Source: Octopus sinensis (taxonomy: Eukaryota). From it: DNA of 64,000 bases. Each line of letters starts with the position of its first letter. Positions within the stretch are counted from its first letter, which is position 1. Shown in pieces: positions 963 through 62,245 of this stretch. The notes beneath the pieces were generated by a model that saw nothing but the letters and a program-made list of their open reading frames with translations, was not told the DNA's origin and searched no databases. The translations under genes were made by a program, and so were the position numbers. Where the stretch lies: positions 54,014,464-54,078,463 of the forward strand of contig NC_043011.1 of assembly GCF_006345805.1 (NCBI RefSeq), given 5' to 3'.

Positions 963-1121
963 AAAAAGATACAGGCTGACATTTGCGTTGATCAGAAAAC
1001 AGTGAAAGATGCCCTGGACATCCTCCGTGGGGCTGTTATGATTGTCTACCCTATGGGGTTACCTCCGCATGACCCTATCAGAATGGAACTGGAAAATAAA
1101 GAGCAACTTGATGGCACCCAG
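963..1121 (+). CDS. CFAP298: CFAP298 (C21orf59/Kurly) internal coding exon, phase 0-0
   Basis: Pyrimidine tract and AG at 961-962, GT at 1122. Translates KKIQADICVDQKTVKDALDILRGAVMIVYPMGLPPHDPIRMELENKEQLDGTQ, matching the CFAP298 motif LRGAVMIVYPMGLPPxDPIRME. Upstream exons are outside the window. Confidence 0.96.
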
Positions 1122-1304
1122 GTAGGATCACACAGGTTCACCTGTATATTTGTGTAATTTATACATTTGTCAACTTTGCTACCTCGTCATCGGCGTTGGT
1201 GTCCTCCTCCTCCATCCCCTTCTTTTTGTTTATGCCTACATGTTTTGTTTGTTAGATTTTCTGATCATATTCTTCAGTCTGTTAAATTTAATTAATTTTG
1301 TTAA

Positions 1305-1528
1305 CCCTTTCGTTACCATATTTATTTTGAGATGCTCTGTGTTTCTTTCAATTAATTTTAAATATAACAAAGAATTTAGTAAAATAACTTAGTTACTACC
1401 ATTAAGCTAGTGTTAGGAACATAAATTGTGACTAAAGTTTGGTGGAAGATTTTAATTCAAAACTTATGAAAACAAGACATTTGTACTCAGAGCCTGAGGC
1501 AGTTTCAGCCGGGTTGTTATCTAAAGGT
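1305..1528. mobile_element. piggyBac-type MITE
   Basis: TTAA-CCCTTT...AAAGGT-TTAA; near-duplicate of the adjacent copy. Confidence 0.7.
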
Positions 1529-1559
1529 TTAAGAATTGTCTCTCTGTTATATATTTTAA

Positions 1560-1751
1560 CCCTTTTACCATATTTCTGTTGAGATGTTCTGTGTTTCTGT
1601 CAATTAATTTTAAATATAACAAAGAATTTAGTAAAATAACTTAGTTACTATCATTAAGCTAGTGTTAGGAACATTAATTCAAAACTTATGAAAACAAGAC
1701 ATTTGTACTACATAGCCAAGGCCGGTTTTGGCCGGGTTGTTACCGAAAGGG
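1560..1751. mobile_element. piggyBac-type MITE, tandem second copy with internal deletion
   Basis: TTAA-CCCTTT...AAAGGG-TTAA; body shared with 1305-1528. Confidence 0.72.
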
Positions 1752-1929
1752 TTAATGTGTCTAATAATGCAGGGCATTATCCTGATTATGGTATCAAGTG
1801 TAATTGTGGTACCTAGTATTCCCTTAGTGTAATTGTGAACATTAGTAAAGACTTTTGCTGTCACAGACTTCCACAAGTTTTGTTTCTATTCACCATAGTC
1901 TACTGTATCGTTCCCTCTGTCTGTTTCAG

Positions 1930-2061
1930 GCTTCTCTGGAAGTCATTCCAGTTGAAAATGCTGACCTCTGGTGGGCAGGTAAGCAGTTGCTACGTGGTAA
2001 AAAGCTGAAGGATTATATCGGCAATAACGAGAAGACGAAAATTATTGCCAAATTACAAAAG
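1930..2061 (+). CDS. CFAP298: CFAP298 coding exon, phase 0-0
   Basis: tttcag| ASLEVIPVENADLWWAGKQLLRGKKLKDYIGNNEKTKIIAKLQK |gtaaac; matches the LWWAxKxL...NEKTKII motif. Confidence 0.96.
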
Positions 2062-58399: not shown

Positions 58400-58958
58400 A
58401 AGCGCCACTGACTCAGTTGAGCTTCTGCTATTTCTTCACAGACTGGCTCAGTCGAGCTCTTTTACAATCTCTTCACAGACTGGCTCAGTTGAGCTCTTCT
58501 ACCTCTTCACAAACTGGCTCAGTTGAGCTCCTCTACTATCTCTTCACAGACTGGCTCAGTTGAGCTCCTCTACTATCTCTTCACAGACTGGCTCAGTTGA
58601 GCTCTTCTACAATCTCTTCACAAACTGACTCATTTGAGCTCCTCTACAATCTCTTCCCAAACTGGCTCAGTTGAGCTCCTCTACAATCTCTTCACAGACT
58701 GGCTCAGTTGAGCTCTTCTACTATCTCTTCACAGACTGGTTCAGTTGAGCTCCTCTACAATCTCTTCACAAACTGGCTCAGTTGAGCTCTTCTACAACCT
58801 CTTCCCAAACTGGCTCAGTTGAGCTCTTCTACAACCTCTTCCCAAACTGGCTCAGTTGAGCTCTTCTACAATCTCTTCACAAACTGGCTCAGTTGAGCTC
58901 TTCTACAACCTCTTCCCAAACTGGCTCAGTTGAGCTCTTCTACAATCTCTTCACAAAC
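58400..58958. repeat. 37-bp minisatellite, about 15 copies
   Basis: CTGGCTCAGTTGAGCTCTTCTACAATCTCTTCACAAA; unit starts at 58810 and 58847 are 37 bp apart; no spacers. Confidence 0.9.
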
Positions 58959-59231
58959 CACCATGCTGCTGTGCCATGATTGCACCGTACTTCTGACAGG
59001 ATGGCTGAACGTGTGCTATGCCTTGCCAAAGGGCAGTCGGTAACTATGCAGGACACAGGTCATCATTCTATGAGGTATTTTCAAAATACCCACATACCCC
59101 AAAGGTACTTAATATATTATAAATACACTTTTTCCCTGTATTCATTATACGCCTCTTTTGACATAATGTTACCCCATTATAACAGAAAAGGAAAGAAGAC
59201 ATGTTGCTATATCAATCAAGGAATTACTCAC

Positions 59232-59361
59232 TGGGTCGGCATTGGTAAGCTACTTCAAGTAATTTTGTTCTGTTTGGGCAAGGATCTGATAGAGTGGTGA
59301 AGGTTTTTACCTTCACCCTTAATTGACATCTCCGTTTCTCTTGGCACATCTTCAATAAAAC
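59232..59361 (-). CDS. EVA1C: EVA-1-like exon (SUEL domain 1, C-half), phase 0-1
   Basis: tttgcag| VLLKMCQEKRRCQLRVKVKTFTTLSDPCPNRTKLLEVAYQCRP |gtgagt; DPCP...LEVAYxCRP motif. Absent from the ORF track. Confidence 0.92.
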
Positions 59362-59698
59362 CTGCAAAAATAAATAACAAATGTAATTTAGATAAAGGGA
59401 TCACAAGGCTGCAAGAAAATAAAACTTACTACGGAATAGTCAAATGATGTGTGAGGAGAAACACACCGATTCCATATGTAATGGGCATCAATAGAGTTGC
59501 TTTAAGAAGTCTATTTTGCACTCCCATGCGTGTGTGTGTGTGTGTGTGTGTGTAGTGTACTGTTCTGTGATGGTAAAATCGACTATTTTGTGATGGTAAA
59601 AGTACTCCATCTGGTGAGAGATGAATATTATTTAATAAACATAATATATATTTTTCTGTGCTACTATTAGTTTCATGCGCTGAGAACATGTTTAAACA

Positions 59699-60116
59699 GG
59701 CATAGGAGTGGCTGTGTGGTAAGTAGCTTGCTTACCAACCACATGGTTCTGGGTTCAGTCCCATTGCATGGCACCTTGGACAAGTGTCTTCTACTATAGC
59801 CTCGGGCCGACCAAAGCCTTGTGAGTGGATTTGGTAGACGGAAACTGAAAGAAGCCCGTCGTATATATATATATATGTGTATGTGTGTGTATATGTTTGT
59901 GTGTATATGTTTGTGTGTCTGTGTTTGTCCCCCACCCCCAACATCGCTTCACAACCAAAGCTGGTGTGTTTATGTCCCCGTAACTTAGCAGTTCAGCAAA
60001 AGAGACTGATAGAATAAGTACTAGGCTTACAAAGAATAAGTCCTGGGGTCGATTTACTCGACTAAAGGCGGTGCTCCAGCATGGCCGCAGTCACATGACT
60101 GAAACAAGTAAAAGAG
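59699..60116 (+). mobile_element. SINE family A, full length
   Basis: GGCATAGGAGTGGCTGTGTGG...GTAAAAGAG. Confidence 0.8.
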
Positions 60117-62027
60117 TGTTTTATGACACATCTGGTGTCCTAACACAACCATCAGACACTGCCCACATATTCATTATGCCATTTGGACAGTGTCTGATGA
60201 CTGTGCTAGGACATCAGATATGTTGTAGAACACTGTTTGGCATGTTCTCAGCATATGAAACTAATAGTAACACATAAAAACTTATATTGTGCTTATTAAA
60301 TAATATATACATATATGTATGTATGTAAGTAAGTATATCATGTAATTGACCAGACTATCAGATGTTGTTATACACTGCTGGTCACAATGCACTTTACATC
60401 GTATTAGTTTTCGAATGATGCCACCCCACTGCCTAGGCAAACAGGCCAACATTCCCCTTGAACAAAGGACAAGACCCTTGTAGGGTTACCCATTTACAGC
60501 TGAGTGAACTGGAGCATTGGGAAGTGAAGTGTTTTGTTTAAGAACACAACATGCTGCTCAGTCTGGGAACCAAACCCATGATCTGTTGATTGCGACATCC
60601 TAACCACTGGGCCATGCACCTCCACACAGCACACACACACACACACACACACACACACACACACACACACACACACACACACACCTTTTATCTTTCACTT
60701 GTTTTAGTAAGGCACAGCCATGAAGAGGTCTTTGTCGAATGTACCAACCCTACAACTTATTTTTTAAGCCTAGTACTTATTCTCTTTTGCTGAACTGCTA
60801 AGTTGCTAAGTTACAGGGATGTAAACAGACCAACACCAGTTGTCAACTGGTGGTGGTGGTGGTGTGGGACAAACATACACAAAAACAGATATGCACACAC
60901 ACACATGTATATACATATATACAATGGGTTTCTTTCAGTTTCTGTGTACCAGATCCTCTCACAGGGCTCTGGTCCACCTGAGGCTATAGTAGAAGACACT
61001 TGCCCAAGGTGTCATGCAATAGGACTGAACTTGGAACCATGTGGTTGGGAAGCAAGCTCCTTAGCACACAGCCACACCTGCACCTATATATATATATATA
61101 TGTATGTATATATATATTTGTGTGTGCGTGTGTGTGTGTGTATAAAATAACAAAGTAATGAAAATGGAGAGCTTCTTATATTGTGAAAAGAGGGAAACAA
61201 TTTCTAACCCTTTTATATTTCAGGCCCAAAATCTCACCACCAGAAAATAACAGCTGAAAGAAATGTCTGTCCATGTAGTACCAGCCATGTTGATTGTTGT
61301 GCAATATATATATATATATCACATATATAAGTGTGTGTGTGTGTGTGTGCATGAAGGACTCTCCTGTTGAAGATGACGTAGAGGTGTTCAGCTTTTGCCG
61401 AAAGACCTGCTGAAATGATTTGCTTATAGTGATCAAATATTCATGCTGCACATTAGCTCACTTCCTCCATTAAATCAACATTTCCTGAACAGGTGCTTAG
61501 TGTACCATGTGTCAGGCATCAAAGTGATCACAGAGCAACAAGAGATAAAGTGTTTTGCTGGTCTAGGAATTGAAACCATGATCTCATGATCATGAGTGCA
61601 ACATCCTAACTACTAGGCCATCTGCTTAGTGGTTAGTGTGTGTGTGTGTGTGTGCATGAAGGACTCTCCTGTCGGAGATGACATATGTGTGTTCAGCTTT
61701 TGCCAAATGATCTGCACAAAATGTTTTGTTTATAGTGATCAACTGTTCATGTTGCACATTGGCTCCCTTCCACCATCAAATCAACATCATCAGAACAGGT
61801 GCATGGTGTACCATGTGTCAGGTGTTGAAGTGATCGCAGAGCAATATGAGACAAAGTGTTTTGCTCAAGAACACAATGTATCAACTGGTATGTTAATATG
61901 TGTGTGTGTTTGTGTGTGTGGTGTGTGTGTGTGTGTGTGTGTGTGTGTTATTGGTTTGTGTGATGATTCCACCACTGTAATTCTACCAAAACCCCTTACC
62001 TTATTTGGCAATATTTGAGCTACTTAC

Positions 62028-62245
62028 GTCCAGTGTATTCGAGAGATAGCAGTTCCGATCACCGTCGCCTTGGGAATGGTCTTTGAATGGCGTGTCCATG
62101 GTACCACACATGTGATGCTCTGATAAACTGTAACCATACTGAGAAAACTGGATGCTGATTAGCGTGCCTTCAGGACAATATATGTACAACATTTTCCCAT
62201 CACATAATGTCTCTCGGAACCGCATCAGGGAGCTTGAAAGGAGAC
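62028..62245 (-). CDS. EVA1C: EVA-1/EVA1C-like: first visible coding exon (SUEL domain 1, N-half), phase 1-0
   Basis: aacag| (G)LLSSSLMRFRETLCDGKMLYIYCPEGTLISIQFSQYGYSLSEHHMCGTMDTPFKDHSQGDGDRNCYLSNTLD |gtaagt. Has the CDG..L...CP....I.I....YG SUEL pattern. The upstream signal-peptide exon was not found. Confidence 0.9.

Follow-up and report, generated by a model that had tools for sequence, protein, structure and literature searches.

The window analysed here, a 64,000-nucleotide stretch of the Octopus sinensis genome, carries the 3' part of one gene on the plus strand and, on the minus strand, seven coding exons of another. The first is represented by its final four coding exons, which close on a TAG stop codon at 8129-8131 and supply the C-terminal 162 of 287 codons; the remaining 5' exons lie to the left of the window in locus L001, which overlaps it exactly. 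The first exon inside the window (963..1121, +) is bounded by CAG|AAA and CAG|GTAGG in phase 0, corresponds to human residues ~125-178, is 71% identical to human CFAP298 (tblastn) and lies within a stretch wholly identical to P0005, the annotated O. sinensis CFAP298. It is followed by exons at 1930..2061 (+; PF11069 positions 1-35, E=5.8e-14; splice sites read from the sequence), at 2767..2862 (+; placed by tblastn, splice sites likewise read), which once spliced completes PF11069 positions 1-97, and at 8030..8131 (+; PF11069 positions 65-97). All four have AG/GT splice sites in phase 0, and tblastn places exon boundaries in common across nine loci. The spliced 162 residues score 146.4 bits against PF11069 (gathering cut-off 27) over profile positions 1-97, are 100% identical to P0005 and, among the matches listed that carry the name, 64-72% identical to CFAP298 proteins of fish, bird and molluscs. 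On these grounds the plus-strand gene is the CFAP298 orthologue (C21orf59/kurly family), which encodes a motile-cilia protein. Polyadenylation-type signals (AATAAA or ATTAAA, which the scan lumps together) stand 41 and 65 nt downstream of its stop.

The minus-strand gene runs from 62245 to a TGA stop at 20030-20028, and all of its introns are in phase 1. Its first recognised exon (62028..62245, -) holds the N-terminal half of a SUEL lectin domain (PF02140 positions 2-42) and is 57% identical to residues 26-102 of a related cephalopod protein, P0001; it opens in phase 1 and so cannot be the first coding exon, which means that a signal-peptide exon must lie upstream. No candidate for it was found in 62246-64000; in P0001 a hydrophobic N-terminus or signal peptide precedes the residues homologous to this exon. 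The C-terminal half of the domain follows at 59232..59361 (-; PF02140 positions 40-80), an exon whose homologues in Tubulanus, Danio and Acanthaster begin at the same residue. A second lectin domain is similarly divided between 55387..55536 (-), identified by its phase-1 junctions and by the two SUEL stretches that appear once the exons are spliced, and 53968..54111 (-; PF02140 positions 33-80), whose end at residue 213 is common to oyster, nemertean and zebrafish alignments. The spliced product thus matches PF02140 in two tandem stretches (90.5 bits), each domain split across two exons. Next come a His/Ser/Thr-rich, mucin-like stalk exon (38979..39494, -; phase-1 splice sites, colinear with P0001 and P0129) and a juxtamembrane exon (23853..24041, -; located by tblastn with P0001, phase-1 splice sites), the junctions of which are backed by a single alignment to P0129 at 89% identity over model residues 283-548. 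The last coding exon (20028..20329, -) encodes a putative transmembrane helix, the hydrophobic stretch ALLYFLLGISLGTICILLIVVVKLIF, and a cytoplasmic FAM176-type tail; it is 65% identical to P0001 and 40-44% identical to the last-exon homologues of Patella and Crassostrea. FAM176 (PF14851) reaches E=5e-5 on this exon alone, and the spliced product scores 26.7 bits against a gathering score of 31.5, a weak match. Signals of the AATAAA/ATTAAA type, again lumped by the scan, begin 559 nt beyond the stop.

EVA-1/EVA1C is a two-lectin transmembrane co-receptor for Slit, and four lines of evidence identify the octopus lectin gene as its orthologue: its domain architecture; its best named relatives, which are "protein eva-1 homolog C-like"; intron positions common to the genes of other species; and its place in a FastTree analysis of 123 lectin-pair regions. 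That tree, made by a fast method with local supports only, divides at a support of 100 into 32 and 91 sequences, the larger side holding all named eva-1 proteins together with the octopus gene, which lies beside chiton, annelid and nemertean sequences, and the smaller consisting mostly of large, unnamed SUEL-lectin proteins of up to 2,965 residues. The preliminary description had called this gene EVA-1-like, and the agreement of these lines sustains that name against the alternative that it is no EVA1C orthologue. Both gene ends given in that description (8131 and 20028) and both of its outer limits (963 and 62245) fall exactly on exon boundaries.

CFAP298 and EVA-1 therefore stand tail-to-tail with 11,896 bp between their stop codons, as given by their exons. 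This spacer (8132..20027) contains both 3'UTRs along with SINE-like and other dispersed repeats, which make up at least 33% of it, and is without repeats from 16.8 to 20.0 kb. Fourteen open reading frames chosen from those of at least 60 residues gave no Pfam match at E<0.05, Rfam and tRNA searches of the spacer returned no matches, and the public annotation places no gene in its first 10 kb (8132-18131). The description of a convergent pair with no recognisable gene between is thus upheld by exons, reading-frame scan and annotation.

The same convergent arrangement, CFAP298 facing a gene with SUEL_Lectin domains and with or without a FAM176 match, recurs in the oyster Crassostrea virginica (3,696 bp between stops), the limpet Patella vulgata (8,167 bp), the nemertean Tubulanus polymorphus (3,550 bp), the zebrafish Danio rerio (1,753 bp) and the starfish Acanthaster planci (4,003 bp), in all of which homologues of the EVA-1 exons were checked by tblastn. 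Orientation is conserved in six of six pair-bearing genomes, spanning four phyla (Mollusca, in three classes, Nemertea, Echinodermata and Chordata), within a comparison that covered 12 loci with 10-kb flanks. By a simple estimate, a given pair of convergent neighbours would reassemble by chance with a probability of about 1/(2 x gene number) per genome, and recurrence in five other distant genomes in one orientation is therefore more than chance would yield. Since the pair occurs in protostomes and deuterostomes alike, the linkage predates their split: on this comparative evidence, the 3'-to-3' arrangement of two non-paralogous neighbours is inherited from at least the protostome-deuterostome common ancestor.

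The contrary reading, that the lectin gene is not an EVA1C orthologue or that the two genes came together independently or through misassembly, is improbable to the point of being negligible. It could draw on the FAM176 score below the Pfam gathering score, on the first EVA-1 coding exon that was not located and on the small number of relatives returned by word-index searches. Yet the window has no gaps (0 N) and is identical to the public assembly CM016873.1; architecture, named matches, introns and tree all lead to EVA-1; the same sub-threshold FAM176 match marks the CFAP298 neighbours of Patella, Tubulanus and Acanthaster (the zebrafish match carries no weak mark); and the chance that one specific convergent pair arose six times independently is vanishingly small. 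Tested in this way, the reading found no support from assembly, orthology or recurrence.

The preliminary description had likened the octopus pair to human 21q22.11, and the presence of the pair in oyster, limpet, nemertean, starfish and zebrafish links the lineages in between. For human itself, the claim of neighbours separated by TCP10L agrees with a positional gene list in its order, EVA1C, TCP10L, CFAP298-TCP10L, CFAP298, SYNJ1 (PMC12652779), and the order in cattle is SYNJ1, C21orf59, C21orf63, MRAP (PMC2615027). The existence of a CFAP298-TCP10L read-through gene implies that in human these two share a strand, with TCP10L downstream. The same two orthologues as in octopus are present, and the 3' end of CFAP298 faces EVA1C; in contrast to octopus, TCP10L intervenes and the spacer is far larger. 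On its presumed strand, human EVA1C converges with CFAP298. The further claim of a bilaterian linkage surviving in octopus is strengthened by the recurrence, but the linkage is not universal: within 10-kb flanks, the octopod Argonauta hians has TMEM9 2.5 kb downstream of CFAP298 and no EVA-1 beside it, Adineta has no EVA-1 beside CFAP298, and Owenia has no CFAP298 beside EVA-1.

Why the pair has persisted is a separate question, for which shared regulatory elements or interacting 3' ends had been proposed at the outset. The second proposal, in which the genes would be held together by convergent transcripts that overlap or abut, with termination in common or antisense regulation, finds its best case in zebrafish. 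There an RNA-seq contig carrying the 3'UTR of cfap298 ends 652 nt short of the eva1c stop codon, and any eva1c 3'UTR longer than 652 nt would overlap it; overlap in zebrafish is possible. In octopus it is implausible, with stops 11,896 bp apart, candidate signals 41-65 nt past the CFAP298 stop and, for EVA-1, from 559 nt past its stop, and a mid-spacer filled by repeats, so that the locus does not have the form of an overlapping, natural antisense pair. Patella has a gap of 8.2 kb and human a whole gene in between, and with such distances overlap cannot be the common constraint. As a general explanation, interaction of the 3' ends is improbable, and it fits octopus poorly.

The leading inference, which we regard as an even call, is that the pair persists through cis-regulatory constraint spanning the junction. 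Regulatory elements of one gene would lie beyond its own 3' end, within or near the adjacent gene, the likeliest owner being EVA1C as a tissue-specific guidance receptor, so that separating the two would disturb the regulation of one of them. Such an arrangement would follow the bystander or regulatory-block model put forward for conserved ancestral microsyntenic pairs. In octopus the spacer would have grown to 11.9 kb through repeats with the pair unbroken, and a loosening or overriding of the constraint could have let a new gene into the junction elsewhere, such as mammalian TCP10L or, in Argonauta, TMEM9. Irimia et al. 2012 (PMC3514665) attribute many pairs of this class to cis-regulatory constraints. 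A weak internal control comes from the other side of CFAP298, where the 5' neighbour stands at a similar or shorter distance than the 3' neighbour and is a different gene in each of the lineages sampled: HSP20 in oyster, NTP_transf_7 in Tubulanus, HSF in zebrafish and SYNJ1 in a bird. This contrast favours a constraint specific to the junction.

The main rival to cis-regulatory constraint is passive retention, a real possibility if one we would rate as doubtful. Here the ancestral pair would have been kept with no regulatory link, its genes having ended some 2-4 kb apart with much of that distance 3'UTR and hence few harmless breakpoints; where genomes rearrange slowly, some pairs of this sort would survive by chance. 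Compact genomes with short spacers (1.75-4.0 kb) are consistent with this, as is zebrafish, in which the 3'UTR of cfap298 takes up at least 1,102 nt of the 1,753-nt spacer. Large spacers, conversely, would admit interlopers or breaks, of which TCP10L in mammals is an example, and octopods show both the 11.9 kb spacer of O. sinensis and TMEM9 beside CFAP298 in Argonauta. The losses in Argonauta hians, Owenia and Adineta mean that any constraint is dispensable, CFAP298 in Adineta and Argonauta being without sign of harm. Lineages that keep the pair are, moreover, mostly slow in gene-order change, and passive retention predicts the same. Against it stand the 5' side of CFAP298, just as short but with changing neighbours, and the rarity of retention in an unchanged orientation across at least five phylum-level lineages; the spacers are also not unusually short for these genomes, given typical intergenic sizes.

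Conserved non-coding elements, in which shared regulation might have been visible, were likewise sought. The spacers of the six species have no detectable nucleotide similarity in common, although over such distances the test has little power, and octopus and Argonauta share nothing but repeats and exons at the nucleotide level. This null result suits passive retention, and no element of the kind that characterises genomic regulatory blocks, in or beyond a bystander, was seen at the locus. In those blocks the usual target is a transcription factor, which neither CFAP298 nor EVA1C is; the likeness lies in a developmental, tissue-specific gene (EVA1C, an axon-guidance co-receptor) held in synteny with the unrelated and broadly needed CFAP298. 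With somewhat less than even confidence, we suggest that CFAP298 and EVA1C may make up a minimal regulatory block of two genes arranged 3'-to-3', under selection since the protostome-deuterostome ancestor, with regulatory elements of one gene at or beyond the 3' end of the other. Were this so, an ancestral junction of ~2-4 kb would make an unusually small and tractable model of convergent-pair preservation. The losses in Argonauta, Owenia and Adineta, and the mammalian insertion of TCP10L, offer natural experiments in regulation versus chance.

The pair is a newly named example within a class of several hundred known, and does not amount to a genomic feature of a new kind. That class was described by Irimia et al. 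2012 (Genome Res 22:2356; PMC3514665) as ~600 conserved ancestral microsyntenic pairs, 54.8% of them 5'-5' in human, with full conservation of orientation in 15-25% of those that are not 5'-5'. As in that class, two unrelated genes are adjacent in several phyla over more than 550 My and separated in fast-rearranging lineages; unlike its mostly 5'-5' members, CFAP298-EVA1C is 3'-3' and keeps its orientation in every pair-bearing genome. The catalogue of ancient metazoan microsynteny thereby gains a 3'-3' pair with clean documentation from six genomes, together with the gene order in the mammalian literature.

The preliminary description had also stressed survival despite the reshuffling of coleoid genomes. 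The pair is indeed retained, an ancestral block that outlived that reorganisation, but its survival is less exceptional than implied: Schmidbaur et al. 2022 (PMC9023564) count 275 metazoan microsyntenies in the squid Euprymna and 216 in scallop, so that squid keeps about as many, a similarity that also accords with passive retention. The names CFAP298 and EVA1C are absent from the accessible supplements of that study; the present locus belongs to O. sinensis, and the other octopod inspected, A. hians, is without the pair. Beyond the junction, SYNJ1 is not beside CFAP298 in zebrafish, oyster or Tubulanus and flanks it in mammals and a bird. In vertebrates the ancestral locus is occupied by EVA1C, and not by the lectin-less EVA1A/B.

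The octopus genes for CFAP298 and EVA-1 stand tail to tail in the window, and the same convergent arrangement recurs in genomes as distant as oyster, limpet, nemertean, starfish and zebrafish. The adjacency proposed in the preliminary description is borne out, and its suggestion that the linkage is ancient is supported. The window is gap-free (0 N), AT-rich and abundant in repeats, and its 18,131-bp overlap with the public O. sinensis CFAP298 locus (L001; GCA_006345805.1, CM016873.1) is identical, window position 1 corresponding to L001 16200. Human CFAP298, used solely as a tblastn probe, gave four colinear matches, which resolve into plus-strand exons at 963-1121, 1930-2061, 2767-2862 and 8030-8131 with AG/GT sites, all in phase 0, and a TAG stop read from the sequence at 8129-8131; the outer limits, 963 and 8131, are exactly those first proposed. 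The spliced product (162 residues) covers the whole of Pfam PF11069 at 146 bits and is 100% identical to annotated O. sinensis CFAP298 (P0005, 287 aa), 99% to the O. vulgaris protein and 75% to that of Argonauta hians, these identities being scored over the window's residues 125-286 alone, with a human N-terminal stretch serving only as length filler. Codons 1-125 lie to the left of the window, within L001.

On the minus strand, ORFs matching Pfam SUEL_Lectin and FAM176 were linked into a gene model by way of canonical splice sites seen in the sequence, and a further exon (24041-23853) was revealed by P0001, a 539-aa related cephalopod protein from the database. The resulting seven-exon model (62245-62028, 59361-59232, 55536-55387, 54111-53968, 39494-38979, 24041-23853 and 20329-20028; all introns in phase 1) ends in a TGA stop at 20030-20028. 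Its 3' junctions are confirmed by P0129, an incomplete protein of a close relative, which aligns with model residues 283-548 in a single HSP at 89% identity. As the exon at 62245 begins in phase 1, a signal-peptide exon is expected further upstream; 62246-64000 held no candidate for it, and it probably lies beyond the window. The product carries two SUEL lectin domains (90.5 bits), followed by a hydrophobic helix and a tail whose FAM176 match, at 26.7 bits, just misses the cut-off of 31.5. Identity to P0001 is about 50% overall and 62% in the lectin domains. The stalk, encoded at 38979-39494 (minus strand), is rich in His, Ser and Thr, with His-rich and poly-Thr runs of mucin-like character; it is probably O-glycosylated and, judged by sequence comparison, is poorly conserved even among cephalopods.

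A word-index search with the full spliced model returned almost no matches, the low-complexity stalk dominating, and a lectin-only query in the same kind of search found P0001 as its sole match. An exhaustive HMMER search of representatives with P0001 recovered 1,201 relatives, of which the best named were annotated 'protein eva-1 homolog C-like' in Liolophura, Tubulanus, Acanthaster and Artemia; chelicerate and crustacean relatives were named 'eva-1' or 'eva-1-like', and nematode relatives carried only the label 'hypothetical protein'. A FastTree phylogeny of 123 lectin-pair regions (a fast method, with supports that are local only) split 32 proteins, mostly large, unnamed and reaching 2,965 aa, from a group of 91 at a support of 100. 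Every named eva-1 protein fell in the latter, where clades track phyla and the octopus sequence and P0001 group with chiton, annelid and nemertean sequences. Genes from other phyla also have exon boundaries at the positions of model residues 72/73, 213 and about 449. From the named relatives, the placement in the tree and these recurring boundaries, we identify the gene as octopus EVA-1, pro-orthologous to vertebrate EVA1C. That the pairing is coincidental, or the genes not orthologous, is all but excluded.

With 10 kb of flank inspected per orthologue locus, a SUEL_Lectin-bearing convergent neighbour was found 3' of CFAP298 in five genomes, in four of which it also carries FAM176, and the EVA-1 and CFAP298 exons of these loci proved homologous by tblastn. 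Stop-to-stop distances are 3,696 bp in Crassostrea virginica, 8,167 bp in Patella vulgata, 3,550 bp in Tubulanus polymorphus and 1,753 bp in Danio rerio; in the starfish Acanthaster, approached from its EVA1C-like protein, CFAP298 lies on the opposite strand 4,003 bp past the 3' end of the EVA1C-like gene. The Tubulanus neighbour (457 aa) has the same length and contig as the protein named eva-1 homolog C-like at NCBI. The human neighbourhood with TCP10L in between, as given in the preliminary description, agrees with the published order EVA1C, TCP10L, CFAP298-TCP10L, CFAP298, SYNJ1 (PMC12652779), and in cattle the order is SYNJ1, C21orf59, C21orf63, MRAP (PMC2615027). The CFAP298-TCP10L read-through gene implies that TCP10L lies 3' of CFAP298, on its strand. 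Human EVA1C presumably lies on the strand opposite to CFAP298. The presence of the pair in lophotrochozoans, an echinoderm and vertebrates makes it at least as old as the protostome-deuterostome ancestor.

Why it has persisted is a question on which we are evenly divided between one explanation and all others: that cis-regulatory constraint, the explanation offered for conserved ancestral microsyntenic pairs, or CAMPs (PMC3514665), would span the 3' junction of CFAP298 and EVA1C. The 5' side of CFAP298 speaks for it: the neighbour there lies at a similar or shorter distance, yet varies across lineages (HSP20 in oyster, NTP_transf_7 in Tubulanus, HSF in zebrafish, SYNJ1 in a bird), and of the gene's two sides the 3' junction alone was spared. 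Counting against the constraint, neither gene encodes a transcription factor, the pair has repeatedly been lost, and the conserved non-coding elements whose presence the preliminary description proposed checking were not detected, either between the spacers of different species, where nucleotide comparison yielded only chance matches of 21-22 nt, or between Octopus and Argonauta outside exons and repeats. Passive persistence, whereby a short, 3'UTR-filled spacer in a slowly rearranging genome simply escapes breakage, is a serious though somewhat less probable account: spacers are short, large ones (mammals, octopods) have acquired interlopers, the same retaining lineages are predicted, and the 275 metazoan microsyntenies of a squid are comparable to the 216 of a scallop (PMC9023564). 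The preliminary description's further idea, that the 3' ends of the two genes interact, is improbable as a general explanation; it is credible for zebrafish, in which a cfap298 RNA contig stops 652 nt short of the eva1c stop codon and the two transcripts may overlap or abut, but implausible across the spacers of octopus (11.9 kb), Patella (8.2 kb) and human. In the zebrafish cfap298 mRNA contig (Danio loci L006/L007) the 3'UTR measures 1,102 nt or more.

At several other loci the arrangement is not seen. In the octopod Argonauta hians the convergent neighbour 2.5 kb 3' of CFAP298 is TMEM9 (last exon at 21008-21250 of the Argonauta locus L002, minus strand; PF05434, 49 bits), and tblastn found no EVA-1 exons in that locus with its 10-kb flank; either the ancient pair was broken within octopods or an insertion occurred at the junction. 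In Owenia fusiformis the gene after EVA-1, which itself spans 90.7 kb, encodes a 2OG-Fe(II) oxygenase, with no CFAP298 exon in the locus or its 10-kb flank. Three further loci are uninformative at this range: the EVA-1 gene of Lycorma spans 462 kb with no neighbour inside 10 kb, that of Melitaea has neither a neighbour nor CFAP298 within 10 kb, and in a bird no gene lies in the 10 kb downstream of CFAP298. Small unrelated genes lie 3' of CFAP298 in the rotifer Adineta steineri, whose CFAP298 (P0004, 468 aa; L008 10001-12691) has roughly residues 98-287 duplicated internally in tandem, which accounts for its being the top-scoring match.

The pair belongs to a known class, that of ancient microsyntenic pairs (CAMPs), in which its 3'-3' arrangement is a minority orientation; orientation is fully conserved in only 15-25% of non-5'-5' pairs (PMC3514665). 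No paper naming the CFAP298-EVA1C pair, or joining EVA1C to microsynteny, was found in the literature searched; an earlier listing in supplementary pair tables is possible. Neither gene name is present in the searched supplements of Schmidbaur 2022 (PMC9023564), and the portion of PMC2447486 searched gave no match. To a comparative genomicist the pair will be unsurprising, but it is a solid and useful example.

The octopus spacer measures 11,896 bp from stop codon to stop codon (8132-20027) and contains no recognisable gene: 14 ORFs chosen from those of at least 60 aa gave no Pfam match at E<0.05, public annotation places no gene in its first 10 kb, and searching the entire window against Rfam and for tRNA genes gave no match. 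A TMEM9 gene hidden there, by parallel with Argonauta, was considered and rejected, there being none anywhere in the window. Dispersed repeat makes up at least a third of the spacer, and 16.8-20.0 kb, beside the EVA-1 stop, is repeat-free. Past the CFAP298 stop, AATAAA/ATTAAA-type signals occur at 41 and 65 nt; past that of EVA-1 they begin at 559 nt.

A SINE-like element of about 180 bp is repeated across the window, at 5236-5908 and in more than 20 dispersed copies (for example 10476-10975, 12614-13184, 24954-25314 and 36850-37015), with related copies in Argonauta hians; in the 5.2-kb last intron of CFAP298 it stands in a tandem array of 3.7 copies. A 151-aa ORF at 43209-43661 (minus strand) matches profile positions 42-146 only of the PIF1-like helicase domain PF05970 (68.5 bits), and is probably a Helitron-type transposon remnant in an EVA-1 intron. 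A 4.8-kb CA-rich microsatellite (43758-48563; period 2, about 2,500 copies, 77% matches) lies in the 14.5-kb EVA-1 intron and produces a GC skew of about -0.98 across 44-48 kb. EVA-1 introns also hold minisatellites at 31662-32459, 35398-36841 and 58407-58958, consisting of an 18-bp unit repeated 45 times, several blocks of 62/63-bp units and a 37-bp unit repeated 15 times.
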